A DNA stretch of 64,000 bases from contig NC_133622.1 in NCBI RefSeq assembly GCF_048593235.1, forward strand, positions 255,630,055-255,694,054, read 5' to 3'. Of this stretch, positions 36,400-64,000 are shown one piece after another. The position numbers were made by a program, and so were the translations under genes. Numbering within the stretch: position 1 is the stretch's first letter; each line of letters starts with the position of its first letter. This DNA is from Sminthopsis crassicaudata. Taxonomy: Eukaryota. The notes beneath the pieces are model-generated. The model had not been told where the DNA came from. It was given only the letters and a program-made list of their open reading frames with translations, and did no database searches.

Positions 36400-38000
36400 G
36401 GCTGCTGGCCTCCAGGGGCCTGCGGACGGACGGACGGAGGGACGGACAGGGGCTCCTCCCGGCGCCGCTCCCCCGCCGGAGGGGGGAGGGGCGGGGCCAT
36501 CCACAGCCGGGGCGGGCACCTCGTCCGGCCGCGGTCAGCGCGGCTCACTCCTTGTCTTTGTGTTTTTAAAGCCCCGCGTGGCCCCCTGGCCGAAGCAAAC
36601 GGTGGCGGGGATGCGGCGGCTGTGGGCGCGGGGCCTGTCGGGGGCGGCCCCGGCCGGGGTCACCTCCATGGGCTCCTCGCCCGCGGGCGGCCGGCCCGGC
36701 CCGCGGGCCTTGCGGGGCTGGTCGAAGCGGAAGTCGGGCGGGTAGCGGTGGGCGCGCACCAGGTGCTCCTTGCGCTCGGCGCTGCTGCGGAACTTGGCGG
36801 GGCAGCCCTCCACCAGGCACTGGTGCATGCTCTGCCGCTCCGCCAGCAGCTGGAAGAGCGAGTCGTGCCACTCGAGGATGTGCACGTCCAGCAGGTGCGC
36901 CGACGGGAAGGAGCGCCGGCACACGGAGCACACGTGCGTGTGCAGCGTCCGGTAGTGGTGCTCGTAGCCCTCCAGGGTGCCGAACTCCTGCTGGCAGCCG
37001 GCCACGTGGCAGCCGAAGGTCGCCACCAGGGGGCGCTCCGGCACCTGGCCGACCTGCGTGATGACATCCTGCAGGTAGGCGTGCCTCTGGACGTCCCCAT
37101 CCTGCGGAGCACAGAGGAGTGAGGCCCCGCCCCCCTCGCTCAGCCCCGCCCTCGCCCCTTCTGCCCGACGCAGGCCCCGCAAGTCAAAGAAGGTCCCACC
37201 CCTCAGCCTCGCTTCCGCCCCGGACCCCGCCCCGACCCCACGTGACCTCGAACAACGGGTGTCCCCGGGGCAGACGCTGGGTCCGCGGCGCGAAGCGAAA
37301 CGGGGCGGCCCCGGCGGCCGGGTGGCGGAGCACGGGCAGCGGGAGCGACTCGGAAGGGCTCCCGGCTGGGGCCGGGCCCAGGCGACCCTCCAGCCCCGGC
37401 GGCAGCTGCATCCTATTCCGGAGCCGGGGGCGGGGCCTAAGGCGGTGGGTAGGTGATGTAACTTCCTGTCCAGGAATCACTTCCGGGTTGCGTCTCACCG
37501 GAAGCGAGGTGCCAAGGCGGCTTCTGGAGTCCTGCCGGGGCTGGAAAGATTTCGGACACCGCCCTCCGTCTTCCTCCCTCCCCGGCTCCCCAAAAGGGAA
37601 GAGTTAGAGCCGAGTTGGAACCCGCTCCCTGCGCCATGCTCGCCTTTGACCTCAGGTTGGAACGCGGAAGGCCATGACCCGAGGGGGGGGGAACAAATCT
37701 CGCTCCGAAGGGGGAAGGGAGGAGATGGAGCCGGCGGACCCGGGGCCGCTCCTCGCAGGCACCGGAGGAGAAAACTGAGGCGGGGGGAGGAGAGGGCCGT
37801 TGTACCCAGTGCGCTTTCTGCTTCGGCGCCGCCGCCTTCCCCCTCCGCGAGCCCCCCGGCCCCCCAGGGGGTGTGCGCGCCCACGCGCGTCCGCGCCGAG
37901 AAGTGCGGAGACGGGCCGCCGCGCTGCGGCCCGAGGTTTTCAGAAGGGGGCGGGGTCAACGCGGTCCGGATTTTAAACTCCGCGGCCGGAGGGGGAGGGG
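36400..38000. promoter_or_regulatory. CpG island covering the ZNF511 body and promoter
   Basis: Very high CpG density. ETS/GABPA-type motifs ACTTCCTG (37461), ACTTCCGG (37489) and CCGGAAG (37498) lie 50-90 bp upstream of the ATG, with a GC box near 37428. Confidence 0.7.
36535..37411 (-). CDS. ZNF511: Zinc finger protein 511, two exons (37411-37247, 37101-36535), 243 aa
   Basis: Exon 1 MQLPPGLEGRL...AAGAAPFRFAPRTQRLPRGHPLFE|gtcacg, a 145-bp intron, then ccgcag|DGDVQRHAYLQDVI...CHVAGC...YEHHY...HVCSVCRRSFPSAHLLDVHILEWHDSLFQLLAERQSMHQCLVEGC...YPPDFRFD...RIPATVCFGQGATRGF. This is the ZNF511 family sequence; the ORF is intact and AATAAA lies at 36351-36356 (-). Confidence 0.92.
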
Positions 38001-40382: not shown

Positions 40383-43300
40383 CTACTCTTTGTCCAGCAC
40401 TCTGGATGAAGTCCCCGGGAGGCAGAGGCGACACAGGAATCTCGTTTTCCAATCTTCCTCACCGTGCTCCCTCCTCACACACATGTGGTGAACCCAGCCC
40501 CGGCAGGACTCGCACTGCAGCTGCAAGGCGGGACGGGGTCACCGGGCGGCTCGGAAGGGAGCTCAGCCCAGGCACCCCCTGCATGACGCTGCCTCATCCT
40601 TGTGCCTGGAACAGCCCCGGGCTCCCCATCTTCTCTCCTCAGGGCTGGAGCTTCCCCGGCCCATCAGAGGAGAATCCGCGCCTCTGCCCCCTCCCCGCCG
40701 GAATCCGGCTCACCATGGTGAAGACGTCGCTGTTGCCCTCGTCAGTGAGCCGGTTGCAGTAGGAGCACGTGTCCTCCATGGTGACCGTCACCATGGGGCC
40801 CTTGTCCTGTTTCTGGGCGCTGTCCGGGGCCTCTGGGAGGCTGTCAAACGTGGACCAGATGTCGGTGTCCGAGTCCTCGGAGGAAGAGTCCTCCAGGCTG
40901 TCCAGGTATTCTTCATCTTCGTCTTCCTCATCCTAGGTGTGCAAAGGCAGCCACGTAGGGAGCTTCCCGGACTCTAATTTTTGCTCCTGAACTTAAAATA
41001 CCACGAGGGAGCATTTCCCCACCCCCCCGGACGGACCACCACAAAATTCCATTTACACCCCGTGGTTCGGGGGGGTGTTCGTTTGCTGAGGCAGTTGGGG
41101 CTAAGTGACTTGCCCAGAGTCACACAACCAAGCAGTGGGAGCAGATTTGAACTCAGGCCCTGACTTGGGGGCGGGCGCTCTACGCTCTGCGCCACCCAGC
41201 TGCCCGCCCATTGATTTTTAAAAACGAATTCCCCGATTTGCATTTTTGTACACAGCTGCAGCAACATCCGGGGCCTGGGCTGCGGGCGCTGGAATTGTGG
41301 TACCAGCCCCCACTGCAAGGGGCCAAAGGCTCCATACGGGGACTTTTCTGCGTTACATCAGGACAGCCTGCTGGGCCAAAGCCCTGGGCAGCCTCCAGTC
41401 CGGAGGCCAGGATTGCCGCCCTTTTGGGCCCTTCAGTCTCCTCGTCTATGAAGCGCTTCCTCCTACCAAGCCTTTTCCTAGAAGTCGGGGAGCACAGAGA
41501 AAGGGGCGAGAGGACTGTCCCTATGTGATCAAGGGGGCGCAGGGAATCAGCCAGGTGCCGGGGCAAAGGAAGAGCCAGAGGGCCGGAGCCCCATGCCAGC
41601 GGGCTCCGGCCTCTCCCCGAGCCCCTCCACCTGCACAGGAACATGGAAGCCTGGACGGCAGCCCTGGTAGGGCAGGTGAGGGGGGGACGGAAGGGGCTGC
41701 CCCTCCCCCACGCCCGGTCCACTGTCTATCTCCTTCCCTTCTGCAAACAGTGTGGTGGGGTTCCCTCATCGAGGGGTGAGGGGTGGGCCACTCACGTTGT
41801 ACGAGTCCCGATTCTGCAGAAAGAGGATCTTCTGGAGCTGCAGGTCCCAGTCCACCTGGTTCAGGTTCACCACCAGGGAGAGCAGGCTGCAAAAGGAAGG
41901 GGCAGGGGGGGAGCGTGCATCCCCAGGTCACGGGAAGGGGCAGCCGTGGGGAAGGACCGCCCCGGGAGAGCCCAGCACCAACCCCTCCGCCCCCCTGGAT
42001 CGGACTCTGATCCAAAGGCGAAAGACCGAGTCTGGAGTCTGGGCAGCCTGACGTTGAATTGTGGCGCGTACCTCTGCCCGTGTGGGATAAGGGGCAAAGA
42101 GACCCCTGAACTACCTGGCCCCCTCCCCGTGTGAGAGAAACACCCGAGGAGCCTTTGGGCCCAAGCAGGGGAGCTCTCTGAAGGCCGGACTTCCCATCCC
42201 CCAGGGCAAGCCCTGGAGACGGTGGGGCCCCGAACCTCCAGTCTCGCTCGCCCCAGGGGTGGGAGCCTTGGAGAAAATGCCGGGCTGGGCCCCTCCACAC
42301 CCAGACAGCCCCGAGGTTACCAGGGCGGAGCCCGGGGGAAGAGCTGCAGGCCCCAGGCCGAGCCACCCCCAGGAAGCGGAGATCCTCCCCAGCCCCACCT
42401 TACCTGCGCACAAACGAGTTGGTCTTCTCCAGGAGCCCGTGCGCCTGGGGGTGATACACGACGATCAGGTCGCACTTGATTTTTGTTTCTGCTCTCAGGA
42501 TTTGATTGAGCTGCAAGAGCGGGTGGGAGGGGAAGGACAAGGGGCCGCCGGGAGGCAAGGGGACCCTGGGTGCTTATCGGTTCCACACCACAGGAGGGCG
42601 GTCGGGGCGCTCAAGCTCCCTACGTCCCAGAAACCGCCCCCTAAATACCAGGAGCTTCCACTGCCAGGCTGGCGTCTCCCACCCTGGGGCCCGCCAGACC
42701 GACCCGAGCCTCGTCTCCCCCCTCCCCTCCCTCTGACTGCTGAGACCCTTTCTACCCGGTCTCGTGCTGACAAGACCCCGCTGCCCCCATTACCCAGCTG
42801 GCCCTGCCCCCCCCCCCCCACGCCCGGCATCGGGGCCGCCTCCGCACCTGCTGGACAAACCCGCCGCACTGGGTGCTGACGATCCTCTCCGGGAAGCCGA
42901 AGCGGTACACCAGCTTGAGGATCTGCTCGGCCGTCTCCTCGGGGGAGCAGGTCTTCATGGGGGCGACCTCCACCCAGCGCGTGTAGTGGTCCACGACCAC
43001 GAAGATGAAGCGCGCTCCCCTGGCCGTCTGCTTCATGGGCCCCACCAGCTGGAGGCCCACCAAGTGGAAGAGGCCCCGGGCCTGGGGGCGAAGAGTACGG
43101 TCAGGGGAGGAGCTGCAGCTGGCAGCCGGCGGGCACTACCAGCATGTTTGCCAGGCCCAGAGACGGCTCGGAAGGGGACTCTGGTGGAGGTGCTTGGGAG
43201 CTGGGAGCCAGCAAGCCTGGGGTCCAGACTGATGGTCCGCCCTCCTAAGGGCTCGATTTCTTCATCTGAACCCCCAGCTGGTACTGTGGCAAGGCTGAGG

Positions 43301-46300
43301 GCACAGAGCCCGCAGCTCCGAACCCTGGCACCGACCAGCTGTGTGAGTCTAGCGGCCTTGCCACGGGAGTTCCAGGGCCTCGGGGTGCAAGCTCAGGGCC
43401 CTGGACAACCCTCTTCCCCAAGGATGTTGCCGCCAGCCCGGCTTCCCGAGCTTCTCCGTGCCATCCCCTCTCCCCACCCGGGCACAGACAAGAAGGGACC
43501 CCTCCTTCTGATGCCCATCGAGAAACAAATGCACTTCTGCCAAAGGCTGCCCTCCCCTCCTCCCCACAGAGAACTGGGAGCTCACTGAGGCAGGGGCGCC
43601 TCCGTCTGCTCCATGCCCGCTCTGAGCCTGGTGCAGGCCCACAGTCCATGGGGGTGAGTCCTACAAGGCCCCCTTCACCCACTTATCTTCGGGTGTGTTA
43701 AGTAGGACTCTGTCAAAGGGATGAGAACCCAGTCCTGGGGGGGGGCCACTTTGGGGGGGACCCCCTTCTTCACAGCCCCCGGTCCCGTTCTTAGTACACC
43801 TGGCACCCAACAAGGTACCTGGGCCGCAGGGAGCTCCCTTCGGGATTGGGGGGGCTGCTTCTTGGCCTTCAGCAACAAGGGCGGCTCCTTCAGCTCGGTC
43901 GTCGGCCCGTCTTTCTTGGGAGCGCGGGCCAGCTTGACTTTCTTGAAGGACTCGGTTTCCCCAACCTGTGAGGACGAAGCTCAAGGCTGGGGCCCCGCCT
44001 GGCCAGGCGGGCATCTGGCCCAGGGGGAAAGTGCCATTCTTGAGGGGACCCTGAGGCTGCTACTTCCCTGCTTTTAGAGGGGCAGACGCGGGCAGGGAGT
44101 CCCCAGCCGCGGCCCCTGAGCCCACTTACCTTGTTAGCTCGGGTTTCCTTCTCTGCCAACTTGTCCTTCTGGCATTTCTTACACTCCTTGACCTGGAAGG
44201 GGGAGGACCGTCAGGCTTTCAGGCTGGGCCGCCTGACCTTCCCAACCTTCTCCTCCCCCTCCCCCTCCCCCTCCTCTCCCTCCTCTCTAGACCGAGGATT
44301 CTGTTTGCATCTTTGGCTGTTTTATTAAACAATTTACCTTTTGAAAGGCGGCTGGGAAAAGTCTGCCCAGACCCACAACTAACATCCCTAGGACAGGCAA
44401 CAATATTCCCATTTTACAGCTGGAGAAACTGAGGCTCACAGAATCTAGTGCCTTGCCAAGGTGGCGCCGGCAGCAAGTGCGAGTCAGCCCCAGCTCCCAG
44501 TCCGGGCGGCCGTGGCGGGCAGCAGGGTCCCTGAGGGTGCAGCCCACCCAGGGGCGCTGGGCCTCTGCCCAGGCGGAGTCTCTGCGGGGCTGAGCTGCCT
44601 TAAAGGCAGGAGAGGACGTGCTCCCAAAGGATATCAGGAGCCAAGGGTCAGCCGGGGCTGGGCTCGCTCTCCAGAGGCGGGGATTACCCAGAGGGGGGGG
44701 GGGGTCTCCAAGCGGGGTCGGAGGCTCAGAACTTTCAGGATGGAACGTTGGCGCCTCTAACGAGTAAGATCTAGAAACACCCAGGACGAGCCCGAGGAGC
44801 CCGATTCCCACAAATGTCAGAACCGCGGGGGGGGGGGGGGGGGGGCAGGTGATGGCCCGTGAGCTAAGGGGAGCCGGGGCCCCTCGAGGCGCAGGTTTGG
44901 GGGGAGGGCCGGCAGCCTCGCTGCTACATCCATGGCAACCATTGGCCCAGTCCCAACCTTGAGGCCGCGGCTTCTCGGAGCAGCTCCTGTCACAGCAGGG
45001 GGAGGGAGGGCGCTGGTTCTGGGCCTGCGCCCCAGCCCTCGCCCGGCTCTTGGGAACAACCCCAAAATCAGAGGCCTCGGGGGAGGGGAGAGCGCGACCC
45101 TTAGAGGGTAAGGGGGGGCCCAAGACCAAAGAAGTTAGAGAAGTGCCCCCGGCTCCTGAAGGACCCTCAGCCGCTCCTCCCCGCGGGAGCAGCCAGGAGG
45201 GGGACTTTGCAGAGGCCTCAGGCAGTGACTGCCCTCTCCCCCGGCTCCCTGGCGGGGGGCAGAGCCCGGACAGCTGCCTGCCCCCATTAGGGGCAGCTTC
45301 TGCAGCGGGAAGTGGGCTTTGCCCAGGGAACAAGACAAGGGAAGGAAGGAGGCCCCGCCCCCACTTCCCAGTGGCCTCTGGCTCTTAGGTCAATTTAAAT
45401 TTTAAATAGGAACCGTGGGCCCAAAAGAAACAAGGGAGGATGGGGAAGGACCAGGGACAGCTGGGATTCCTTTCCTGGCCTCCACTTACGAGCTCAGCCG
45501 GCCCACTTTGCAGCCCCCTCCCCAGCACCGGCGCAAGGTTTGAATGGACAGGATTTGGGTCAAGAGGCGGTTCCAGGTCTCTGGGCACATACATTTTAAC
45601 CCATTCGGGACCGCCTGCCATGGGGGAGGGGGGGAGTTGGAACAGAAGGCTTCGCGAGGGTCAGTGCTGAAAAGTTACCCAGGCATGTCTTGTGTAGGAA
45701 AGCGGGGCGCAGCTAGTGGGGGGGTGGATGGAGCACCAGGCCTGGGGTCAGGAGGAGCCGAGTTCCGATCCCACCTTATACAGGACTTCCTGCTGCGTGA
45801 CCCCAAGCGCCTCAGCAGAAAGACTTGTTTCCAAGAGGCAGTTCTGGCAGGGGCAGGGACCAGCGAACGTCCTTAAAGGCCCGGCTGAGCCCCTCAGCCC
45901 AGGCCCCCCCCCCCTGCGCAGCCAGTATTTTCAGAGAGTAAAAAGGGTCCAACTACCACGAAGGAGGGAGGGCGGCAGCCTGGGGCCCCTTCTCCGCAGC
46001 TGTTCCAACGCCCCCCAAAACAGGAGCCCGGAGGAAAGCAAATGCAGGAATCTCCGGGGTCACGTTAAGCTACCGGGTCAGAGCCCCAAGTTCAGAAACC
46101 CTGGGGGGGGGCGGGGATAAATGGCTCCACTGGAGCAGCGGGAGCCGGGCTGGGCCACTCTCTGCCCCCACCGGCCGCTGGAAGGTTTTAGGCTGGGGGG
46201 GGTTTATGCCAAGTTGGCCCCGGTTCCGCCCTCCCCGCGGCCTGGGATTTGGGGGGAAGGCCAAGGCAGAGGGCGGCTCCCCAAAGAGGAAACCTGCCTC

Positions 46301-48144
46301 CCAGAGGAGTCCCAGCACTGGGGTCTGAAGCCCCTCTCCCCCCCACCCCCCCCCCCGGCGAGCTCTAGTTACCCATTTCCGGGAGTCGTAAACCACCCCG
46401 GGCCAGTAGTAGGACTTGGTGACATTGCCCCCGGTCTTGCGGATGCCCAGGTGCCCCCGCTCGGAGATGTGGGCCTCCAGGAACGCCTGCCTCTTCTCCT
46501 CCAAAGTAAAAAGGATCTTCTGCTTCTTCCCTCGGCCCTTGTAGTAAAGGTGATTCCCTGGCGAAAGAGCCAAAGCCCAGAGCGGCCGCGTGAGACCCCG
46601 GAGCTCCCCAGCCACCCCCACCCCCGTGACCTTGGCCCTTGACCTCGGCCCCCTCGTTCAGGAAGCATCGGATTGCCAAGGCCACGGGCACTGTCAGGCC
46701 CGGACTTGAGGAGGAGGATCCCCGGGGTCCTGATTACCTAGCAACCCCCCCCCCCAAAGACTGCACGGCAAAAAGCACTTAGCAGCCTGGTCCTGCCTTC
46801 AATGCCCTCCCGCTGAAAGGGGGGGGCGATAGGTGAGGGCAAAATAGGGGGGGGGGTCAGAATAGAGCCAGATTTGCCCCTTTGAGGCTTTTAGATGGTG
46901 GCTCAGGGGCAGCGCTTTCTTCGAGAGGAAGCCCAGCTGTCACCCCTTCCTCCCGGGGGAGCCTGGGACCTACCTCTGGGCCTTTGTGCCAGACATTAGC
47001 CCACAGTTCCGATCCATTTAAAAACCTGGCTGAGTGACCCTGGGCAAGTCACTTAACCCCCGCTGCCCCGGCGCAAAAAGTTAAAAACCAGGGAAGCAGG
47101 TGGAGGCGGCTGGGGAGGGGGGAGGGGGTTCAGAGAGGCAGGAAGGCGGGAGGAGCCCAGCCCCCAGGGGGGAGATGATAAAGTGGTTTAGTGGCCCTTG
47201 ATTGCTGCCTTTTATTATGTCAATGGCCTCCTAATGCGCTCCGCCCCCGCTCAATTTTCCCGCTCAATTTTCCCCCTCAGCCCAGTGAATCAGCCCCGGC
47301 CTCCCTCCCTCTCCCGGGGCCCAGACTTCAGAAGGGCTGAGTCCTGGGGGGGGGGCCTTATTCCCTACCCCAACACACACACAGCGCCCTACAAATCACC
47401 CCCATCTCCTGCTCTCAGAATCGCCCGGACTCCCCCACAGCCAGTCCCAGAGGGGCCCCCATTATTTCCTTTTCCATCTGGACGCCCCCAAAGACCGTCC
47501 ATCAGTCCGGAAGCGGCCCCTCCTGGGGGCTCCGGGCCGTCCCCACCGGCCACCTCCCTTCAGGGGCAGCAGGGCATTTGAGCCCCTTCCCGCCCGCCTC
47601 TCCTCGGACTCCTCCCCCAAGCTTCCCACAGTGCCCCCAGGACACCCACAGGAGCCAGCTCGGCGGGGCACCAGCCTTTGAAAGTCCCAGAAGCTGGGGA
47701 GCAGCCGGGCTGGAGGTGCAAAGAGGGCCGGGAGGCTGGAGGACCCCTGGACTTCCGGCCACAGGTGAGGGCGGGAGGGAGCTCCCTGACCTAGTCTAGG
47801 AGGAATCAGGGACTGGGGGAGGGGCGGGGAGGGAAGGCCATCCAAGGTCAAGTTCTGGGACCAGAGAGAGGGCAAGAGGGAAACACTGACCTTCCTGAAA
47901 GAAATTCGCCTTCTGCAGCAGCTGCCTCCGCAGAGCCTCCGGGGAAGAGCCGGCCTTCAAAAGCTGCAGAGCCGTGGCCTGGCGGGAAAGAAGCAGCGGG
48001 TCGGGGAGTGGGGGGCTGGGGGCCCTGACCTGGCAGCCCCCTGATAGCCGGCTCCCCTGGCGGCCGGGGCCCCCAGACCTGCGGCATGCTCCCCCTCTGC
48101 ACCCTGCACCCGCTCACCTGCCGCTCCCTCCGAAGGGACTCCAT
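40383..48144 (-). CDS. Integrase-PHD gene, copy B: Gypsy/GIN-like HHCC + integrase core (degenerate triad) + acidic region + PHD finger; 10 coding exons, 432 aa
   Basis: Exons (-): 48144-48118 MESLRRERQ; 47978-47891; 46557-46373 (EAH...GHLGIRKT...SYYWPG); 44192-44130 (VKECKKCQ); 43965-43819 (basic linker); 43081-42848 (GLQLVGP...VVVDHYTRWVE...GFPERIVSTQCGGF); 42510-42404 (YHPQAHGLLEKTN); 41886-41796 (DWDLQL); 40932-40714 (acidic, TCSYC); 40520-40383 (LQCESCRGWVHHMC...FLCRLC...*). All introns are GT-AG, phases match, sum 1299 nt, no internal stop. The first exon is the least certain. Confidence 0.85.
41090..41205 (-). mobile_element. Marsupial SINE fragment in the last-but-one intron of copy B
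   Basis: Reverse-complement SINE motifs AAGTGACTTGCCCAG...ATTTGAACTCAGG...CCAGCTGCCC. Confidence 0.7.
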
Positions 48145-48187
48145 CCTCGCAGTCTCAGCTGATGGGCAGCAGCCGCCAGCCCGGGCC

Positions 48188-48196
48188 TTATTTAAA
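48188..48196 (-). promoter_or_regulatory. TATA-like element (TTTAAATAA) upstream of copy B first exon
   Basis: About 45 bp upstream of an ATG in strong Kozak context (gcgaggATGG at 48144), in otherwise GC-rich DNA. Confidence 0.4.
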
Positions 48197-48549
48197 GCAA
48201 GGGGGCTGCCTCTTCACTCCCCCCAGCCCCGCCCCCACCAGTCCTACCCATCCCCCTCACCACCGTCCCCTTCCTGCTCCTGCCGCAGCACGGCCGGCCC
48301 ATCTTGTTGGGACCCAGGAGCCCAAAGGAAGTGTATTCCCCCAGAAGCCTCCTCGACACTGCTGGGGGGGGAGGAGGCTCCCCAAGGTCCTCCCCAGCTG
48401 GCCAGGCCTCTGGACTCTGCTGCCTGAAGGGAGAGCAAGACTTTGGGCAGCTCTGCCCGCTTAAAAATTTACCGGGAAGCCGGGACAAGGCTCTGAAAGG
48501 GAGGCTGGGCGAAGGGAGGCTGGGCTGGGCTCTCATTCCTATTGCTCAG

Positions 48550-48750
48550 TGATAAATGGCTGCACCCAGAGAAAGAACCACAACTCGGCATTTGCCCTCC
48601 TGTTGTTCTCTTGCATTTTGTTTTCCTTCCCAGGTTATTTTTACCTTCTTTCTAAATCTTTTTTTGTGCAACAAGAGAACTGTATAAAAATGTACCCACA
48701 TATTGCATTTAACTTATACCTTAACATGTTTAACCAAAAAAAGAAGAAAT
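48550..48750 (+). mobile_element. Truncated LINE-1 3' UTR fragment just upstream of the copy B promoter
   Basis: AT-rich island TTTTTGTGCAACAAGAGAACTGTATAAA...TATTGCATTTAACTTATAC ending in an A-rich tail, within GC-rich DNA. Confidence 0.55.
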
Positions 48751-50397
48751 AACTGAGGAAAGGAGAAAGGAGGCTGGAGGACTCCCGGCTTTGCTCCGGC
48801 CCCAGCTCCTCCCGGCTTCCCCTGCTCTCCCAGCTCCTCCTCCTCCTCGGGCCTTTGAGCTCCCCAAGCCTTTACTCCCCTGTCCCCTTTCCCCCAAAGC
48901 GCCTCCGTGCTGGCCACAGCCCACCTCCCCTCGGCCGGGCGCACCCTGACCTGGCGGGGCCCCCTTGTCCAGCGCCGAACCAGGCCGCCCCTGGCCGGGC
49001 CCCCTCCCCTCCAGGCTCTCATTTTGAGGCTCGAGGTGCATCAGGGCCACAGGATTTGAGTGTGATGGGACCTGGGCCAGCAACTCCCCATATTCCCGGG
49101 ACAAGTGGGGGCCTAGCCCCTCCCCCCAGGGCAGCCTTCCCAACATCAAGTGGGCCTCTGAGCCCTCCCCTCCAGGAGGACGTGGTCCTCGCACCCCAGG
49201 ACAGCCATCTTGCCTTCTCCAGTCCCTGGGCCCTTCCTCCCAGGCTGACCCGTCCATTCCACCTCCTCCAGCCCCTCTTGTCATCCTCTCTCTGACCTCT
49301 GGACACTTTCTGCGCCTACAAACAGGCTTGTGCTCTCCCGCCCTCAAAGAGCCCCCATCCCCGCGCGTCCTGTCCCCTCCTTCCCCTTTTTGCCTTGCGA
49401 AAGACTGGGCGGATTTGTAGCCGGCTGGCCTGGGAGACAGCACTCCTCTGGCCCCGGGGTACATGGGGGGGTCTTGTGGGCCCCCCTCAGGGTCACCTCA
49501 GCAGAGGAGCGGACTCAGCTGCCCCCCCCTTCCCCATTACTGGGTTCCTATTGCAGTGAAGGAATGAGGACTTTGTTTTCTCTGCCAAAAAAAAAAAAAA
49601 ATGTTCTTTGATGTAGAAATTAGACTAATTGGGGGTCGCCTCCCCAAGACAATGGGGAGAGAATCCAGAGCCCTCCCTTGGCCTCCCTGAGCGGCCTCAG
49701 GTCAGTGACTTACCTGCCCAGGTGTAGGCAGCCTCCAGCATGAGCTGTCGGGTCTGCAAAGCGCCCCACTGAACTGGCGCTGCTGGGGCCCCTTGGACGG
49801 ATGAGGGAGTGGCGGCAGGTTAGGGGATTTTCTCAGGGTCCCGGAGCCTCGGAATTCAGGCCTTCCTGCCGCGAGCTTCCGCCCCCTCCTGGAGGAGCCC
49901 CTGCTGCTTAGAGGAGGGTCCCTTGCAGCCCAAACCTCAGCCCCTCTGGGAGGGATCCGCAAACTGGCCAAGAGTCAATGCTCGAGGTTTTGTGGGCGCA
50001 GAGACAACAGCAAGGCTCCGGCAAACCTCCATGGGATTCTTGTAGAGGAAATTAAAAGTGTATAACAAGAACTGAGGCCGCAGGGCTTTTTGGGGGTTTT
50101 TTTGATGTGGATTATTGAGAAGGAAAATTGGGATTCTTTTTGAGAGGAAAACTTTCCGCTTAATTGGGATCCAAAGAGCCAAACCAGGGGCCGGTGTTCC
50201 TGCCGGCGCAGGGACGGAACAAAGGAGCGCGGTGACAGTGATGGAGAATTTCCTGGGGAAAAGCAGCAGGAATCCTTCATCTCAAAGTTAAAGCTCAGGC
50301 AGATTTAATCAAGATTTAGACAAATGGGGAAAGCGCACTTCGAACCGAGCAGCCTAGGTTTACACCATTAGCGCCCGAGGCTGGGAAAGCGGCCGAC

Positions 50398-50483
50398 TCC
50401 TCCTCCTCCTCCTCCTCCTCCTCCTCCTCCTCCTCCTCCTCCTCCTCCTCCTCCTCCTCCTCCTCCTCCTCCTCCTCCTCCTC
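50398..50483. repeat. (CCT)n trinucleotide microsatellite, about 28 units
   Basis: Directly visible, between the two integrase-PHD genes. Confidence 0.95.
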
Positions 50484-51395
50484 CGCTCCCCTTTCCCAGG
50501 GGAAACTCCCCTCGGCGCTCCCCGTTTCCCTTCTAATTGCTCCCCAGAGGCAGGCCCAAGGACAGCCTCCGCACCACCGTCCGGACCGGTTTTCAGAACC
50601 TCTGCTCCTCCTGGGACGGGATGCAGCCCTCGGCAATGTCCTGGCAATCCCGGCTGTAGGAAGGATGCAGGGGAAACCCCAAGGGCAGCGGGGACCCCGA
50701 TACTGTTCAAGAAATCCCTAGGCTCCCCGGCAGTCACCTTAGGATTGGGGCTGCTGAGGGGCCCTGCTTCAGGGGGGCTGGGAGCCTCGTCCTTGGGGGG
50801 GGCCTCTCCCACCTGGGCTCAGACAAGTGCTCGGTATCAGGAGGGGGGGTCCTCAGCCCCATTGCCAAACTCCCCCCCCTCCCGGTGTGGAGTTCTTTTG
50901 TTCTGCCCCTCCCCCCAAGTGGATGTGCCTGCTCTTTGCTCTTTCCTCCCTGGGGATTTAGCCCTCTTTAATGGAAGGTCCGATTAGGAATCACAACTTC
51001 TCTCCACTTAGAGATTGTGGAGACACCAGTCCAGAACCCGTTTGGGGGATCCCCCGTACCCCAACCCTCTGGCTACTACAAACAGACATGTCTGGCCTCT
51101 CAAGCTCCCCTCAATCTGGCTCCGGACGCCTTTCAGACCTGGCCCGCGTCAGGCCGTTCTCACCGATCCCCCCAGTCAGCAAAGCGCCCCCTCTGGTCCC
51201 ATCCCAGGCCGCTCGCCCTCCCTTAAGGCCCCAGCCCCGCCTTGGGCTCCCCCCTCCCCCAATCTCATGGTTACTTGTTTTTAGGGCTCATTCCCAGCCC
51301 TGTCCCAGAGAATCAAGGACCCTCTCACTTTCATCTTTACACCAAAAGTACAGCCGGTGCCAAATAAGTGCTGAACGGTGCCAAATAAGTGCTGG

Positions 51396-51401
51396 TTTAT
51401 T
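51396..51401 (-). terminator. Probable polyadenylation signal of integrase-PHD copy A
   Basis: First AATAAA on - after the stop at 52195 (about 800 nt), followed by a tandemly duplicated CACTTATTTGGCACCG element. Confidence 0.5.
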
Positions 51402-52194
51402 GATAGCAGGACTTTCTGAGACAGCAAGAGGCAGAACACAGCTCCGCGGCCGCAGGGCACAGCGCGGGTCCGCGCCAGGGGACGGAGCCGCCCGGCCGGA
51501 GGGGAGCAGGACGAGCCCAGGCTTCACTCAAGGCCAAGGGGCCGGTTTGGGGCGGCTGAGCTCGGAATAACCGCGGGAGCCGGCGGGAGCGGCCCGTGCC
51601 TGAAAAGGGACGTCAAGGTCACCAAGAGACCCGGAGATTGGGGAGGGGCAGGGCCCAAGTGGCGCCGGGCCCCCTGGGCTCCTCTCAACCCCCCCCTTTC
51701 AGAGCCGCTTCTGAGGCAGGCTCAGCTTCAGGCCCCGCCCTCTCTCTGTGGAGGGGGGGAGTGGGGGGGGTTGTGTTGTTGTGGGGGGGGGGCGGCACAC
51801 ACTGTCCCGGCCATCCCGGTTCTCTGCCTCTGTCAGCCTAAGGCTTGCATGTCCCCTAGTTGTCTGGTGATGACTTAGCAGGTCATGGGGGGAGGGGGAG
51901 GCTGTGCGGGAGCAGCGCGGGTCGGGGTTCCGGGGGCCGCAGGGAGGCCCTCTGCCAGACCTTTCCTGTCTCTGGGGGATGATCGCTGGAGGAAAGGCAG
52001 AGCCGGAGGAGGAAGGCCCCTGAGCCCCCCCCCCCAGCCAGAGGGCAGCCCAGGGTGATAGTCTGGGACCAGCCAGCAGAGGGAGCCGGGCCTGGGGAGG
52101 GGGAACACGAGCAGAAAGCCCCCCCACGTTGGCCCCCCCAGCTGCTCGGGGCCCCGGGCCCAGCCCCCGGACTCACCCCCGCGGTGCCGCTGCG

Positions 52195-55100
52195 TCACTC
52201 TGGGGCTGGGGGCCCGGGGAAGCAGGCCTTGCACCGGAACGCGCTCCTCCAGCCGTCGCCCCGGTACCAGCGCTGCACACAGGTGCGATGGGCCCAGGCC
52301 TGGCACGCGCCGCACTGCAGCTGGGAAGGCGGACCGCCGTTACCCGGCAAGCTCCGCGGGAACCACCACGGACCGATCGCCCGCTCCCACCCCCCCACAA
52401 AACCACTAAGCGCCCCCTGAGCTGCTCTCCCCTTCCCCCCTCCTTGCCCCTCCCGGAGGGTCCGGCCCCAGGGTGCCATGGAGCAGGTCAGACGCCCCTG
52501 GGGAAGGCTCCCCAGCGGAGCAAGGAGCACGCTGGGAGGGAGGGCAAAGGGGGTCCCGGGCTGCAGGCCCACTCACCATGGTGAAAACTTCACTGTCGCC
52601 CCTGTCGGCCAGCTGGTCGCAGTAGGGACACGTGTCCTCCACGCCCAGGGCGGCCACCAGCACCGTCTCCGAGTCCTCGTCTGGGGCCGGCTCCGAGGAG
52701 GCCGAGGGGAAGGGAGCGGAGGGCAGAGCGTCCTCCCCGTCCAAGTCCTCCTCCTTCTCCTCGGAGCCCAGGTCTTCCTCCTCAGACTCATTCTCTGCCT
52801 GGGGGGCGAGAGCCCAAGCCCGGCCTCAGCACTGTCTGCCCCCACCCCCAGGGGCTTCCCGCCCACCCCTCTGCTGGTCTCTGCGCCAGCCCCTTACTGA
52901 GGAGGCCCCAACCCCCCTCCCCCACCCGGCCTGCCCCTTTCTCCATCCCCTGGGGCAGCCATCATCTCCAGGGCCGGCCTCACTTTTACTTCCCCAGATT
53001 TGAGGGCAGGGGGCGTTTGCTGACCGGTTCTGCCCTCCGCTCCCCATGTGGGTGAGGGCGGGGGCGCCCAGCCCGAGGAGCCCCGGGCACTGCCAGGGAG
53101 CCCCGGGGAAGGGGACCGAGAGCTCAGTGCGAACATTCACGTTCAAAGCCGGCCGTGGGCACTTAGGACTCTGTAGTTTCTTTTGGGAGAATAGCTGGAA
53201 ACCGGTTTTTATTGAGGTGTTGGTACAAAAGCCTTAGAACCCAGGGGAACAAGAAGCGGGAAAAGAAAAGCCGGTTTTGGGGACCGCGTCCGAGGGGCCG
53301 CGTCGGGGTGACTGGGGAGAAAAAGCGCCCGCGCAGTTTTCTTAGCCAAGGGGCTGGCGTCTGGCAGTCACAGGCCCCCCTCCCTTGCCCAGGACTCCCG
53401 GGGCCGACATCCCGGCGTTCCCTGGGGCCAGGCGCAGGCGGACCGTCCTCACTCCAAGGCTCCCTCTCCGTTTGACAGCTGAGGCGCGGGGGCAAGCGGA
53501 TCTGCCCAGGGTCTCCCGACTAAGGGGCCAGCGGCCGGGGCTCCGGACTCCCCTCCTCCCCACGCCTGGGGCTGCGGGACCGACACCTCTCTGGCTCGGA
53601 GAGCCCCGGCCGGGAGCCTCCACCCAGCCGCCCCCGTCGCAGGTCACCGGCTTCTGGACGGAACCGCCGGCTGGACATCACTGAGCAAACTCGGGCAAAC
53701 TGACCTGCGGCTCGGCACCTGGACGGGCCCGGCCAAGGGAAGGCCCAGGTGCCCCAGGAGCTCCTTTGGAGGCCGGTGGCCGGCTCTTTTCTCTCCTGGG
53801 AACCTTCCCCGCACCACACCCCAACACGCCCCCCTCGGGAAGCATGTGGAGCTCAGCAGGGCAGAGCCCCCCCCCCCCGCCTCAGGCTCCTCTCTCACCT
53901 AGCCCGCGGCCCGACTGTGAGCACCCAGAGACCTCCCCCCCAAGCCAGAGGCGGGCAGATGGAGGCCAAAGGGAGCACACAGATGGCAGAGTGGCCGATG
54001 GGGGGGGCACGCAGGGGAGCAGGAGGAGCCCTCACCTGCATCTGCAGGAAGAGAACGTTCGGCAGCTCGAGGTCCCAGTTGGCGGTGTCTCCCCTCACCA
54101 CCAGCGTGAGCAGCCTGAAAACCAAAGAAGTTTGTTGGGACTCCACAGAAACAGGGGGACGGCCCCCGATGGCGGCCCCCCTCACCTCTGCACGAAGGCG
54201 TTGGTCATCTCCAGGAGCCCGTGCGTCCGGGGCTGGTAGCTGGCTACAAGGTCACACTGGAGATCGGCCCGGATCCTCAGAATCTGATTCAGCTGCGAGA
54301 GACGGGGGGGATGGGAGGCTGACAGTAAGGGGGACATGGGAGGCTGGCAGCGAGGAGATCATGGAGCAAGCACAGCCTCTGTGCCTCATCCTCGGGGCCG
54401 CCTCCAATCAGAACCCAGCTCTGGACTATCCGGGCATGGATAAATGGAGCCCAGGGTTGGCGTCTCCCCCTTTACTCCCCAGCAAAGGGGATTCTGCTGT
54501 GCATTCTTTGGGCTCCCCACTGATCTAGAGCCCAGAGAGTCCTCGCCCGGTTCCCCCAAGCTGAGTCCGTGCTTCTGTGCACTTCCACCTGGAGCGCCCC
54601 CTCCCGCACTCCCGAGGCCGGCCTGAGCAGCCGGGCCCCCCTTTTGGCCCCCACATCTGGCCCCTGAGAGCCCAGACCCCAGGCCGAGCACCTGCCGGAC
54701 GAAGTCGCCGCTCTGGGTGCAGACGATCCTCTCCGGGAAGCCGAAGCGGTACACCAGCTTGAGCACCTGCTCGGCCGTCTCCTCGGGGGAGCAGGTCTTC
54801 ATGGGGGCGACCTCCACCCAGCGCGTGTAGTGGTCCACGACCACGAAGATGAAGCAGGCTCCCCGGGGCGTCTGCTCCATGGGCCCCACCAGCTGGAGGC
54901 CCACCAAGTGGAAGAGGCCCCGGGCCTGGGGGCGAAGGGCGCGGTCAGGAGAAGAGCTGCAGCCCAGCCGGGCTCATCTGAAGCTCTGGTGCTCAGAATG
55001 CTGGTTCGGACAAGGCCGATACCCAGAGAGCCCGTGGCTCAGCATCCGGCCTTGTCGCTGGGCACAGCCTGCCCGCCATCCTGGCAGTGCCCACCCCCAG

Positions 55101-57662
55101 GGCCCCGCCTTTCCTTTACCCAGATGCCCGTGCTGACGGTAATCCACAAGGATTTGCAGGCTGATGGGCACAAAGGGAAACCCTCACCTCGACCCGGGGA
55201 GGGCCCAAGTGAAGAACCAGAACTCACCCTCCTCATCCCCTCCCCTCCCAGAATCCCCTCCGGGGCCCAGCTGCCACTGGCCCAGTCCAGTCCAGTCCTT
55301 CCGGGTGGACGTCTGATGGGGCACCGAATGCCCCCTCGCTGGAGAAGGGGGTAAACAGCGTACCTGGGCCGCCAGGGCTTCTTTCTTGGGGACCACCGCA
55401 GCTGGGGGCAGGAGTCGCAGGGGCGGCGAGACGGACGGCCTCCCCCTGAGCCGAGCCGCCAGGGGCACTGCCTGCTTATACTTCTTAGCTTTGACCTGGG
55501 ACCCAGTGGGAGGTGTCTGTGGGAGACTCCAAGAAAGACCGTCTCTCCCCCCAGCCCCTCAGACCTCCCCCCCAAGCTCTGACCACAGGCCCCCCCGCCC
55601 TTACCCTGGCACTCCGGGCTTCCTGCTTTGCTAACTTGTCTCTCTGGCACTTCTTACACTCCTTCACCTGGGGATGGGAGAGCCCGAGCTGAAGCAGGGG
55701 GGGCCAGGAGGAAAGCCCCCAGCTCCTGACCTCCCCTCCCCCCCCAGCCGTCACTCGTATCCTGGACCCTTCTTATGGGCCCCTTCCCACGTCCCCACCA
55801 ATCTTAAACAAAACCAGCCGACCTCCCCGGGGGGAGATGCCACGGCCAAAGGAGGGATGGGGGGGGGAGTCTGCGGCCCCACCCATTAGTGGTCATGGGA
55901 CACAGGACAAGAGCTAGTGAGCCCTAAAGTACCTAGGGGCCCAACCCCCCCACATCCCCAATGGGAAAGCACCAAAGCCCAATGAACAAGCACCTATTAA
56001 GTGCTTGCTGTATGCCCCGTGGCGGGAACAACAGACCAAAAAACCCCACAGCCAATCAAAGATCAATTAGCCCTCAAGGGCAAAGGCCAGGCTGGTGGTC
56101 AAGGCTGCATCCATGATTGACAGGAGGTGGCTTGGGGGGGGAGGTGGGGATGCTGTAGTTGGCCCCTTGAGGGACAGCAAAGTTGTCCCCCGGGATGGAA
56201 GGAGGCAGGGCAGGGTTCAGAAGGGACCCTGGGGGAACCTGGGCTTCCCAAAGGTGGAGCTGCCCAGCTCGGCGCTGCCAGGGAGGGGCCGGGGCAGTGA
56301 GGTGACCGTGTGTGTCAGAGCAGGGCATGGAGGACAGAGTGGGTAGGGAGCCTAGAAAGGGAGGCTGGGAGCAGGCCGGCCCCGTGGAAGGGTTGGGATC
56401 GCCCGCAGCTCCTCGGAGCCTCCATGCATCCCTCCCTGCCCCGGGCGCCCCCTGCGGCACCGTCCCTTTCCCGCAGCTCCCCCTGCTCTCTCTGGCTCAG
56501 TCTCTCGGTTTCCCCATCAGTAAGTGGGGACCCCACCGCCACCACTTCCGGGGCGTCCCTCACCCACTGCCGGGCGTGCAGCGTGATCCTGGGCCAGTAG
56601 TAGGACTTGGTGATGTTGATGCCCGTGGCCCGGATGCCGTGGTGCCGCTCCTCCGAGACCACGTGAGCCTCCTCAAAGGCTTTCCGCTTCTTCTCCGGGG
56701 TGAAGAGGACTCTCTGGAACTTGCCTTTGCCCTGGTAGTACAGCACGCCGCCTGGGAGCAAGCGGGCCCAAGAACTGCTCGGGGCCCCGCCCCCTCCCTC
56801 CCTGGGGCTCAGCGGAAGCCTTTGGGTGAGGCCCCTCCAGCACCAGAAAGTGCTGATCCAGGCCCACCTCTCCCTCCCAATATGGAGCCCTCCCTGCCTC
56901 CAGCTCCAGCTGCCGCCCTCCAGCCGTTTTCAGTCCTGTTCCATCTCTGTGGCAAAGACATTGCCACAATTCCCTTCTCCGCCCATTTTACAGACGAGGA
57001 AACTGAGGCAAACGGGGTTAAGCGCCCAGGGTCCCATAGTTAGGAAGGGTCTGAGACGGATATGAACCAGGAAGAGGAGTCGTCCTGACTCCTGCCATTC
57101 AACCAAGAAGGCCCCCAGTCTTTGGGGTTTTACTTCCCCAGTCCTCCTGCCTAAAGGATGGCTTCCACACAGGTGGGCAGAACGGCCTTCCTCTCCCATC
57201 CTTCCTGCCCTTTAAGGCTCCTTCCCACAAGCACCCCCTCTCCCCAAAAGCTACCCCGCCTTCCCCAGCCAGGCCACGCCCCCCCAACCCCTAGGAGGTG
57301 ACTGAAGGCGCCAGACAGGAGGACACCCGGGCCCCCTCCCCCAGCCCAGCCCCGGGAAACCAAGACCCGGCACGCCCCAGGTTTGGGGACAGGGATGGGA
57401 GCTGGAGCCCTGAGGCCCCCGAGGAGCTCGAGACCCGAGGCAGGGAGGCCCATGAGCCCCGGGCAGCTAGTCACACAGTGCTCAAGATCCCGGGCCCAGG
57501 GGCTTGGCTGAAGTCTAGCACAGCTCCCCGGGGCCAGGGGCTGCAGGGCGGCTAGGCACCCGGCCGGAAGTGACACTGACCTTCCAGGACAAAATTGGAG
57601 TTCCGGCTGAGCTTTCTTTTGACCGAAGGGGTCGGGGACGAGGTCATCCTCAAAAGCTCCAT
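52195..57662 (-). CDS. Integrase-PHD gene, copy A: same architecture as copy B; 9 coding exons, 410 aa
   Basis: Exons (-): 57671-57581 (ATG at 57662); 56751-56564 (EAH...RHHGIRAT...SYYWPR); 55667-55605 (VKECKKCQ); 55495-55364; 54925-54692 (core); 54292-54186 (YQPRTHGLLEMTN); 54114-54036 (NWDLELPNVLF); 52798-52577 (acidic, TCPYC); 52320-52195 (LQCGACQAWAHRTC...FRCKAC...*). All introns are GT-AG, phases match, coding sum 1233 nt. An additional upstream exon is possible. Confidence 0.87.
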
Positions 57663-62699: not shown

Positions 62700-63134
62700 T
62701 TCAATTGTACCTTCAATAATTCTTTCCCTAACTTACAACCTCATTATACAATTTGGACTTATTTTCACTAACCAATTAATTTCAACACATGTTTTTCTGT
62801 GTTTTTTATTTACCTAAACAATGGATTTAAACTTCAATGCTGTCACTGAATTTCACCTGCCTTCAGTTGCTTTCTGATTTCAAAATAAGTTTTCTTTTTC
62901 TGGGAGCACCTTCAATCAATGTCCCAATCACGATATATTTGGTGCTTTCAGGTTGGTTGTTTAAAAACAGTAAACATAGGAGATAAAATGAATTCCAAAT
63001 CTACCCACTTTTATCCTTTTCTTATTCCTTATTCTGCCTTCTAGTAATAAATATTCTGCAGTGGGCCAGAACTCTGGACAAATGTACTTGAAACAAGGTG
63101 TTTAACTCAGTGGAATTGATGAGATGATGGTTCT

Positions 63135-64000
63135 CATATATAGTCAGTGCTCAGCGTGGTGATGTCATGGTTCTCTAGTTCTCATATATAGTCAGTGCTC
63201 AGCGTGGTGATGTCATGGTTCTCTAGTTCTCATATATAGTCAGTGCTCAGCGTGGTGATGTCATGGTTCTCTAGTTCCCATATAGACTCAGTGCTCAGCG
63301 TGGTGATGTCATGGTTCTCTAGTCCCCATCTATACTCAGCATGGTGATGTCATGGCTCTCTAGTCCCCATATAGACTCAGTACTCAGCATGGTGACGTCA
63401 TAGTTCTCTAGTCCCCATATAGACTCAGTACTCAGCATGGTGACGTCATGGTTCTCTAGTTCCCATATAGACTCAGTACTCAGCGTGGTGATGTCATGGC
63501 TCTCTAGTCCCCATATAGACTCAGTACTCAGCGTGGTGATGTCATGGTTCTCTAGTTCCCATCTATACTCAGTACTCAGCATGGTGATGTCATGGTTCTC
63601 TAGTCCCCATCTATACTCAGCATGGTGATGTCATGGCTCTCTAGTCCCCATATAGACTCAGTACTCAGCATGGTGACGTCATAGTTCTCTAGTCCCCATA
63701 TAGACTCAGTACTCAGCGTGGTGATGTCATGGCTCTCTAGTCCCCATATAGACTCAGTACTCAGCGTGGTGATGTCATGGTTCTCTAGTTCCCATCTATA
63801 CTCAGTACTCAGCATGGTGATGTCATGGCTCTCTAGTTCCCATATAGACTCAGTACTCAGCGTGGTGATGTCATGGTTCTCTAGTTCCCATATAGACTCA
63901 GTACTCAGCGTGGTGATGTCATGGTTCTCTAGTCCCCATATATACTCAGTACTCAGCGTGGTGACGTCATAGTTCTCTAGTCCCCATATATAGTCAGTAC
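63135..64000. repeat. Minisatellite, 48-bp unit (with 42-bp variants) GTCAGTGCTCAGCGTGGTGATGTCATGGTTCTCTAGTTCTCATATATA
   Basis: Period 48 (63143, 63191, ...); runs off the window end. Confidence 0.95.

Follow-up and report, generated by a model that had tools for sequence, protein, structure and literature searches.

Tandem marsupial genes that join a catalytically dead GIN-like integrase to an acidic linker and a PHD finger

The domesticated integrase genes of vertebrates, GIN1, GIN2, KRBA2, SCAND3 and NYNRIN, have no function that is known to us. In chromoviruses, the integrase ends in a C-terminal chromodomain, a reader of histone marks that serves as a targeting device. In this study, we describe two tandem paralogous genes, A and B, on the minus strand of a stretch of 64,000 nucleotides (nt) from Sminthopsis crassicaudata (assembly GCF_048593235.1, contig NC_133622.1, forward-strand positions 255,630,055 to 255,694,054). 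The whole stretch is referred to below as the window, and all positions are those of the window unless another locus is named. Both genes encode a catalytically dead integrase body, which is followed by an acidic linker and a C-terminal PHD finger.

GIN1 and GIN2 consist of an HHCC zinc domain and an integrase core encoded by multi-exon host genes at fixed loci, and A and B are alike in these respects. However, A and B differ from them in carrying the acidic linker and the PHD, in forming a tandem multi-copy cluster and in having 9-10 instead of eight coding exons. In addition, no GPY/F integrase C-terminal module was recognised between the core and the PHD when the spliced proteins were read, where no dedicated motif or profile search was made. 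The GIN2 gene of marsupials is flanked by OGFOD2 and ABCB9 and consists of eight coding exons, and its DDE triad is not conserved (PMC3424704). An orthology of A and B with GIN2 was considered and rejected, as the neighbour of A and B is a C2H2 zinc-finger gene, joined in the Tasmanian devil by an OSBP-like gene, and as the number of coding exons is 9-10.

Some Ginger1 transposases also have a C-terminal PHD, for example Ginger1-9_HM, which contains Ulp1 and a PHD (PMC2836005). By their published description, the order of an integrase-type transposase and then a PHD is the same as in the present family. These Ginger1 transposases differ from A and B in being mobile, in having terminal inverted repeats and an intact DDE triad, and in carrying the Ulp1 protease. 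The chromovirus integrases are alike in bearing a histone-mark reader on the C-terminus, and the weak matches P0159 and P0160 carry this domain (PF00385); however, their reader has the chromodomain fold, and it sits on an active enzyme in a mobile element.

The PHD finger and the integrase body

The finger of each gene is divided between the last two coding exons by an intron, as listed below together with the gene models.

52577-52630, minus strand: N-terminal half of the A finger, C-P-Y-C ... E-V-F-T-M; the first Cys codon starts at 52630
52321-52576, minus strand: intron within the A finger, 256 nt, phase 0, GTGAGT...TCCCAG
52222-52320, minus strand: C-terminal half of the A finger, L-Q-C-G-A-C-Q-A-W-A-H-R-T-C ... 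C-K-A-C
40714-40767, minus strand: N-terminal half of the B finger, C-S-Y-C ... D-V-F-T-M, with the first two Cys ligands and the Met at a cage position; the first Cys codon starts at 40767
40521-40713, minus strand: intron within the B finger, 193 nt, phase 0, GTGAGC...TTGCAG
40422-40520, minus strand: C-terminal half of the B finger, L-Q-C-E-S-C-R-G-W-V-H-H-M-C ... C-R-L-C, with ligands 3 to 8 and the Trp at a cage position
52195-57662, minus strand: gene A, 410 amino acids (aa), nine coding exons (57662-57581, 56751-56564, 55667-55605, 55495-55364, 54925-54692, 54292-54186, 54114-54036, 52798-52577 and 52320-52195, stop included); model guided by the devil protein P0158
40383-48144, minus strand: gene B, 432 aa, ten coding exons (48144-48118, 47978-47891, 46557-46373, 44192-44130, 43965-43819, 43081-42848, 42510-42404, 41886-41796, 40932-40714 and 40520-40383, stop included); model guided by orthologues

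Six conserved blocks of these models were obtained by comparing the DNA of the two halves of the region, and the remaining exons were determined by protein-guided comparison. Every intron of the two genes (eight in A and nine in B) has GT-AG ends, there are no internal stops, and the stop codons lie at 52197-52195 in A and 40385-40383 in B. A preliminary description of this DNA had pointed out two peptide strings with the features of a PHD finger. Both are present on the minus strand in the last two coding exons of A and B, and the limits that it gave, 40383 and 52798, coincide exactly with the B stop codon and the first base of the A acidic exon.

Relatives were collected by an exhaustive protein search with the 89-aa integrase-core exon as the query, and a word search added paralogues of the wallaby, wombat and devil. 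Close relatives of the core exon (E < 1e-20) were found in marsupials only, where they are unnamed, being annotated as 'uncharacterized protein LOC...' or with automatic names after GIN1. They comprise clade A (wombat P0157, devil P0158 and the A-like P0003), clade B (wombat P0001, wallaby P0154 and devil P0156) and clade C (devil P0152, Antechinus P0151 and bilby P0004), and the orthologues span three marsupial orders. The cluster of dead GIN-like integrase genes is apparently specific to marsupials. The family is missing from a published list of ten retroelement-derived domesticated genes of marsupials (PMC3670739).

The zinc-ligand pattern C-x2-C-x16-C-x2-C-x4-H-x2-C-x15-C-x2-C (C4HC3) is complete in A, B and all nine relatives. 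The preliminary description had stated that all eight ligands are kept in both copies in spite of their divergence, which agrees with the full pattern found here and with the 24 of 51 residues that A and B share. It had also named a lack of ligand conservation in orthologues beforehand as one outcome that would refute it; all eight are kept across the three clades and in no fewer than five further marsupial species, namely the Tasmanian devil, the wombat, the wallaby, the bilby and Antechinus. The conserved intron that it described as splitting the finger is in phase 0 after F-T-M in both copies. This intron follows the Met codon directly, with the donor ATG/GTGAG and a pyrimidine-rich acceptor ending in CAG/CTGCAGTGC, and it interrupts the same codon position in the devil genes A (370 nt), B (369 nt) and C and in the bilby gene C. 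Across the 11 sequences of the three clades, 15 of the 51 columns of the finger are invariant: all eight ligand positions, the Trp, the Tyr within C-x-Y-C, and five further residues (L, D, G, F and Q). The B-type fingers are identical at 47-49 of 51 residues among dasyurid, wombat and wallaby, and the A-type fingers at 48 of 51 within dasyurids.

The C-terminal half-exons match the Pfam PHD family (PF00628) with E = 1.7e-4 (22.0 bits) for B and E = 1.6e-3 (18.9 bits) for A. These scores are under the Pfam cut-off of 24 because each half-exon represents only half a domain, and spliced orthologues pass the gathering score of 24 (24.7 bits for devil B and 24.6 bits for P0003). A profile of nine PHDs of the family matches solved PHD fingers in the PDB with E = 3.4e-5. 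The AlphaFold2 model of the devil B finger has a predicted local distance difference test score (pLDDT) of 66 overall and 72-85 in the core, and its strands at residues 38-40 and 47-49 and helix at residues 50-56 correspond to the cross-brace elements of a PHD. When this model was used as the Foldseek query, the top 30 matches were all PHD fingers, with a probability of up to 0.99.

The C-terminal half of the B finger also matches the Pfam family Znf_SCAND3 (E = 9.9e-7, 29.1 bits). A kinship with SCAND3 was rejected because A has no such match, because full-length B orthologues are below the threshold (18.6-21 bits), and because the SCAND3 integrase is reportedly Ginger2-derived (PMC3575427).

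The window is closest to the Tasmanian devil, with which the amino-acid identity is 92-100% in most exons and the synonymous divergence (dS) is 0.2-0.5. The ratio of non-synonymous to synonymous divergence, omega, was calculated by the Nei-Gojobori method from the window and the devil DNA (locus L001). It is 0.17 for the whole of gene B (dS 0.20), 0.05 for the B integrase core and 0.17 for the B linker before the finger; for gene A, it is 0.12 over the last three exons and 0.037 in the PHD (3 non-synonymous and 14 synonymous changes). Genes A and B are under purifying selection. The ratio between A and B within the window (0.48 overall and 0.39 in the PHD) was set aside in favour of the devil comparison, since it is unreliable because of saturated dS. 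We regard it as almost certain that these host genes are under selection and that their finger is a genuine PHD.

The preliminary description had further assumed a domesticated transposase-like body, which turns out to be a catalytically dead integrase with an HHCC zinc domain and a core, located as follows.

56564-56751, minus strand: A exon that encodes both His of the HHCC zinc domain, whose Cys pair falls in exon 55667-55605
54692-54925, minus strand: A integrase-core exon, with the same catalytic substitutions as B
46373-46557, minus strand: B exon with the two His of the HHCC zinc domain; Pfam Integrase_H2C2, E = 3.3e-7, and 9.3e-13 on the wombat orthologue
44192-44130, minus strand: B exon with the Cys pair of the HHCC zinc domain
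42848-43081, minus strand: B integrase-core exon, Pfam rve

The Integrase_H2C2 matches of the HHCC zinc domain reach E = 1e-10 to 1e-13 in Pfam. The rve matches of the core (E = 1e-3 to 1e-5) are under the gathering score, which indicates that the core has diverged. The catalytic positions were read off an alignment with an amphioxus GIN1-like protein that retains both Asp. The first Asp is replaced by Gln (G-L-Q-L-V-G-P) and the second by Thr (V-S-T-Q-C-G-G-F), while the Glu at the third position is kept in A and B; in clade C, the catalytic Glu is lost too. With neither catalytic Asp left, the proteins are incapable of DNA cleavage or joining through the DDE mechanism.

The integrase-core exon, together with about 48 nt of the upstream intron, has a history of its own. 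In this segment (42848-43129 in B and 54692-54971 in A), the DNA of the two genes is 92.7% identical with a dS of 0.076, whereas dS is 0.8-1.7 in the remaining exons. The core proteins of A and B agree at 70 of 78 residues in the window and at 72 of 78 in the wombat, compared with 67 of 78 for dasyurid and wombat orthologues. This pattern points to gene conversion that would have been recurrent and confined to the integrase-core exon.

Ancestry of the family and origin of the finger

A tree was calculated from the 138-aa core of 109 proteins, with the redundant isoforms and fragments P0002, P0006, P0010, P0015, P0153 and P0155 left out. The A/B/C family forms one clade (support 0.99), within which the order of A, B and C is blurred because of the apparent gene conversion in the core. 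Next to it stands clade D, a second marsupial dead-integrase gene without a PHD (support 0.75). The A/B/C family and clade D group with a set of mostly fish genes that combine THAP with a dead integrase (support 0.95), and the whole assemblage nests among vertebrate proteins named 'Gypsy retrotransposon integrase-like protein 1' (support 0.99). A and B descend from a GIN/Ginger1-type integrase. The Ginger ancestry suggested in the preliminary description was thus right in kind, that is, GIN/Ginger1-like, but the genes are not GIN2.

Clade D consists of wallaby P0037 and Antechinus P0015 and P0162 (LOC127545670), and its proteins have a repetitive tail rich in Gln, Pro and Thr. The wallaby gene lies between a RabGAP-TBC gene and CASTOR1, outside the A/B/C cluster. 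An identity of clade D with GIN2 was ruled out by position.

The fish genes of this assemblage (P0073, P0169, P0170, P0011 and P0036) encode an N-terminal THAP domain and a catalytically dead GIN-like core; that of the sardine, which is annotated only as 'zgc:153292', is found at 6001-9300 of L002 (OY974088.1). They resemble A and B in the loss of the catalytic Asp and in three intron positions of the core, which A and B have in common with the sardine gene: one precedes G-R-W-E-W / A-R-G-L-F, another follows C-L-K-E / F-V-Q-Q, and the last follows L-I-D-K / S-F-V-R. Moreover, the clupeiform members have a conserved C-terminal finger, L-Q-C-x-E-C-x-x-W ... C-x-x-C, at the same place as the PHD. 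This finger matches ligands 3, 4, 7 and 8 and the Trp of the PHD (hhalign P = 0.0011, with a probability of only 20%), and its homology with the PHD is only a lead from sequence comparison. The fish genes differ from A and B in that THAP replaces the HHCC domain at the N-terminus, in that the finger has four ligands and no intron, and in the lack of an acidic linker.

The preliminary description had left open a transposon or a captured host exon as the source of the PHD. Tentatively, the PHD may have been present already in the transposon or in an ancient domesticated ancestor, as opposed to having been acquired from a host gene in the stem lineage of marsupials. The C-terminal PHD of some Ginger1 transposases, of which Ginger1-9_HM is the example given above (PMC2836005), argues for such an origin, as do the C-terminal PHDs on the unrelated integrases P0045, P0100 and P0122, the grouping of the fish THAP genes with the marsupial genes and their shared introns, and the clupeiform finger at the equivalent place. 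However, the low hhalign probability argues against it, and the fish finger is without ligands 1, 2, 5 and 6 and without the intron. The finger is also missing in the other fish members and in marsupial clade D, and the data are likewise in accord with a gain in the stem lineage of marsupials. Inheritance and capture of the marsupial finger are therefore taken to be about equally likely.

Candidate ligands of the finger and the acidic linker

The preliminary description had listed a Thr before the first Cys, a Met before the second Cys pair and a Trp two residues before the His, all of which are as stated. Thr precedes the first Cys in A and B, but this position varies across the family (T, M, S or I), so that it is not conserved. 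All A and B sequences have the Met three residues ahead of the third Cys, and each of the 11 sequences has the Trp two residues ahead of the His. In PHD readers, this Met is a conserved element of the methyl-lysine cage, and Tyr23 of BPTF occupies the analogous position (PMC8246079). The substitution M882A in TAF3 makes binding more than 100-fold weaker, and the cage of RAG2 consists of a pair of aromatic residues together with a single Met (PMC8246079), the residues of RAG2 that engage methyl-lysine being Y415, M443 and W453 (PMC10462144).

By sequence, the solved structures that match best are PHF2, PHF8, PHF20, ceKDM7A, EBS, SPP1, MLL1 PHD3 and BPTF, and the top fold matches in Foldseek are AL3-H3K4me2, ceKDM7A, MLL1 PHD3 and TAF3. 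In the HMMER alignments, the Met and Trp of the family correspond to F-M-I-E-C / D-W-F-H of PHF2, K-M-M-Q-C / R-W-V-H of MLL1 PHD3 and Y23 / W32 of BPTF. The invariant Tyr inside C-x-Y-C is aligned with BPTF Y10, a correspondence given by the sequence alignment alone. The PHDs that read H3K4me2/3 (PHF2, PHF8, ceKDM7A, PHF20, EBS, MLL1 PHD3, BPTF and TAF3) are like those of the family in C4HC3 spacing and predicted fold, and the motif [FK]-M-[ILM]-[QE]-C-x-x-C-x-x-W-x-H is common to both. They differ in the first Cys pair, which is C-x2-C with the invariant Tyr inside in the family and Tyr-Cys-x-Cys in the readers. The E-values between the family and the solved H3K4me2/3-reading PHDs are only 1e-5 to 1e-2, which indicates that there is no close host donor among the solved structures.

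Several points weigh against the reading of H3K4me2/3 by these fingers. Of the methyl-lysine cage proposed in the preliminary description, the Met and Trp hold in that they align with cage positions of PHF2, MLL1 PHD3 and BPTF; the N-terminal position is unfilled, with no conserved aromatic residue before the first Cys such as ING2 Y215, BPTF Y10 or RAG2 Y415, so that two of the three to four usual cage positions are occupied. In addition, the Met is replaced by Val in all three clade C sequences. The best match of the family profile is the SHPRH PHD, for which we know of no H3K4me3 reading. Among the fold matches there are also BHC80 and BAZ2A/B, readers of unmodified H3, and the H4-binding MLL3 PHD6, and the AlphaFold model of the devil B finger is moderate, with its overall pLDDT of 66. 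As for conservation, the A-type fingers of dasyurid and wombat are identical at only 30 of 51 residues, and the omega of 0.28 for the B finger is based on only 9 substitutions (5 non-synonymous and 4 synonymous). Because of the incomplete cage, the Val of clade C and the mixed fold matches, H3K4me3 reading is a reasonable prediction for A and B and not a finding. From the alignments described above, the fingers of A and B may read H3K4me2/3, which we propose with somewhat less than even confidence.

It is less probable, and in our view rather unlikely, that the finger is a real PHD for another ligand than methylated H3K4, be it the H3 tail without modification, a different histone or a partner that is not a histone. 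In that case, the Trp would be conserved for this ligand or for folding. The incomplete cage, the Val of clade C and the best profile match to SHPRH are consistent with such a ligand, and so are the fold matches to BHC80, BAZ2A/B, UHRF1, the complex of MLL3 PHD6 with H4, and Pygo-BCL9. To our knowledge, the invariant columns L, D, G, F and Q do not belong to the usual K4me3 signature, and they could form a surface of another kind. However, readers of unmodified K4 are usually without this Trp as far as we know, and the M-x-x-C ... W-x-H arrangement of the family is also that of the RAG2 sequence. The same arrangement is found in PHF2, MLL1 PHD3 and PHF20 and contains the cage residues (PMC8246079, PMC10462144).

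The acidic hinge reported before the finger is present in both genes.

52631-52798, minus strand: A acidic linker, 56 aa, of which 21 are Asp or Glu, net charge -20
40768-40932, minus strand: part of the B acidic linker in the penultimate exon; the whole linker has 59 aa, of which 22 are Asp or Glu, net charge -20

Asp and Glu thus make up about 37% of the A and B linkers of the window. In the A and B orthologues, the linker from the core to the first Cys is 52-60 aa long (73 aa in the A-like P0003) and contains 26-39% Asp and Glu, with a net charge of -17 to -21 that is retained though the sequence drifts. The linkers of clade C are 21-26% acidic, with a net charge of -7 to -9. The equivalent stretch of devil A has a pLDDT of 25-28 in a weak full-length AlphaFold model, in which the linker looks disordered. 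A docking of the PHD on the core in the full-length model was not accepted, since the model is too weak (pLDDT 55, six sequences).

RAG2 likewise has an acidic hinge abutting a PHD and belongs to a transposase-derived system. The Met three residues before a Cys and the Trp two residues before the His correspond to M443 and W453 of mouse RAG2 (PMC10462144, PMC8246079), whereas Y415 has no conserved counterpart in the family. RAG2, in which a six-bladed Kelch domain precedes the hinge and the PHD on the N-terminal side, is the Kelch-repeat partner of the still-active RAG1, while in the family the module sits on the dead integrase itself. RAG2 was absent from the PDB sequence matches at E up to 10 in searches with the family finger, and no Kelch domain turned up in Pfam scans of the family proteins. 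The parallel with RAG2, which the preliminary description had drawn as an analogy only, therefore holds for the module order and the cage motif and remains an analogy, with no homology found.

In keeping with this analogy, the acidic linker and the PHD might act as an intramolecular switch as in RAG2, where the integrase body would be held inactive until a histone mark releases it. The order of an acidic stretch abutting a PHD is the same, and in RAG2 the hinge suppresses transposition and H3K4me3 binding alters RAG1 allosterically (PMC10462144). The net charge of the linker, which is kept in all A and B orthologues in spite of the sequence drift, would also suit a switch. However, no DDE catalysis is left to regulate after the replacement of both Asp, the linkers of clade C are much less acidic, and neither RAG2 homology nor a Kelch domain was found in the searches described above. 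Regulation of catalysis is what the hinge and finger of RAG2 are best known for (PMC10462144); in a dead integrase, such a role cannot apply as such, and we consider a switch of this kind improbable.

The locus and the proposed role of the genes

In the Tasmanian devil (locus L001), gene C on the plus strand is head-to-head with A on the minus strand, followed by B on the minus strand, a C2H2 zinc-finger gene and an OSBP-like gene. The order of A, B and the C2H2 gene is common to the window and the devil. In the window, the C2H2 neighbour is represented by a coding exon at 36535-37182 on the minus strand (Pfam zf-C2H2 and DUF7565). Its devil counterpart lies beyond gene B at 20360-21260 of L001, and an OSBP/PH-domain gene comes next. 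This neighbour presumably resembles ZNF511.

An open reading frame at 59264-60151 on the plus strand (M-A-G-A-G-T ... S-S-S-F-H-L ... T-D-Q-L-P-R-S-S-P) matches the devil clade C isoform P0153 at its N-terminus and probably represents exon 1 of a third paralogue, C, which would be head-to-head with A, whose ATG is at 57662. The putative exon runs into a 51-bp minisatellite (59374-60084), and the remainder of the gene would fall outside the window.

Terminal inverted repeats were searched for, and none brackets gene A or gene B. An inverted pair at 41085-41130 and 47027-47072 (46 nt, 83% complementary) lies inside gene B and looks like two opposite-facing fragments of short interspersed elements and not like transposon ends. 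The other inverted repeats were rejected as transposon ends, being G-runs or bracketing no gene. The fixed locus, the introns and the absence of terminal inverted repeats indicate that A and B are host genes and not mobile copies.

The window is unusually rich in minisatellites (2091-3237, 5009-6292, 9149-9907, 12954-13954, 33207-33561 and 63130-64000), which consist of 46 units of 25 bp, 30 of 43 bp, 24 of 33 bp, an (AGAT)n repeat around a run of N at 12681-12938, 3 units of 117 bp and 18 of 48 bp. Many of the long open reading frames in the window are artefacts because of these repeats. Between genes A and B, at 50316-50636, there are open reading frames with a long run of triplets coding for Glu and Arg.

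That A and B are decaying transposon copies or pseudogenes, in which the PHD pattern is a functionless relic, would agree with the lost catalytic residues and the repeat-rich region but is extremely improbable, as the reading frames are intact over 9-10 spliced exons, omega against the devil is 0.12-0.17, orthologues occur in three marsupial orders, and synteny is conserved with no flanking terminal inverted repeats.

Judging from their sequences, A and B are probably undescribed chromatin-binding proteins. The PHD would be the targeting part of the protein, and at active promoters the dead integrase body may then bind a partner or DNA. Between them, the acidic linker would be a flexible spacer, which may in addition attach to histones or loop back onto the protein's basic surfaces. 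As a whole, we find the best explanation of the locus in dead-integrase host genes with a histone-reading PHD as the targeting part, to which an even chance is given. A more far-reaching and clearly unlikely proposal concerns a tandemly expanded marsupial family, not seen in other groups, with no fewer than three clustered paralogues (A, B and C). In it, a dead-integrase scaffold that binds DNA would be parked on active chromatin by a histone-reading PHD, and the finger would be the survivor of the transposon's own targeting domain. Under this parked-scaffold proposal, the gene conversion that keeps the core alike and the fast divergence of the A-type fingers and of the linkers would point to an evolving function instead of housekeeping, which could be the control of transposons or of germline chromatin.

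The combination of a dead integrase with a probable histone-mark reader leads to a testable idea about what such a gene may do, namely the tethering of something to marked chromatin. The cluster itself provides a natural series, in which the B finger is strongly conserved, the A finger is fast-evolving and the C finger has Val in the place of Met. If the finger comes from the ancestral transposon, a chromatin-targeting device would have been kept in this marsupial family after the death of the enzyme.

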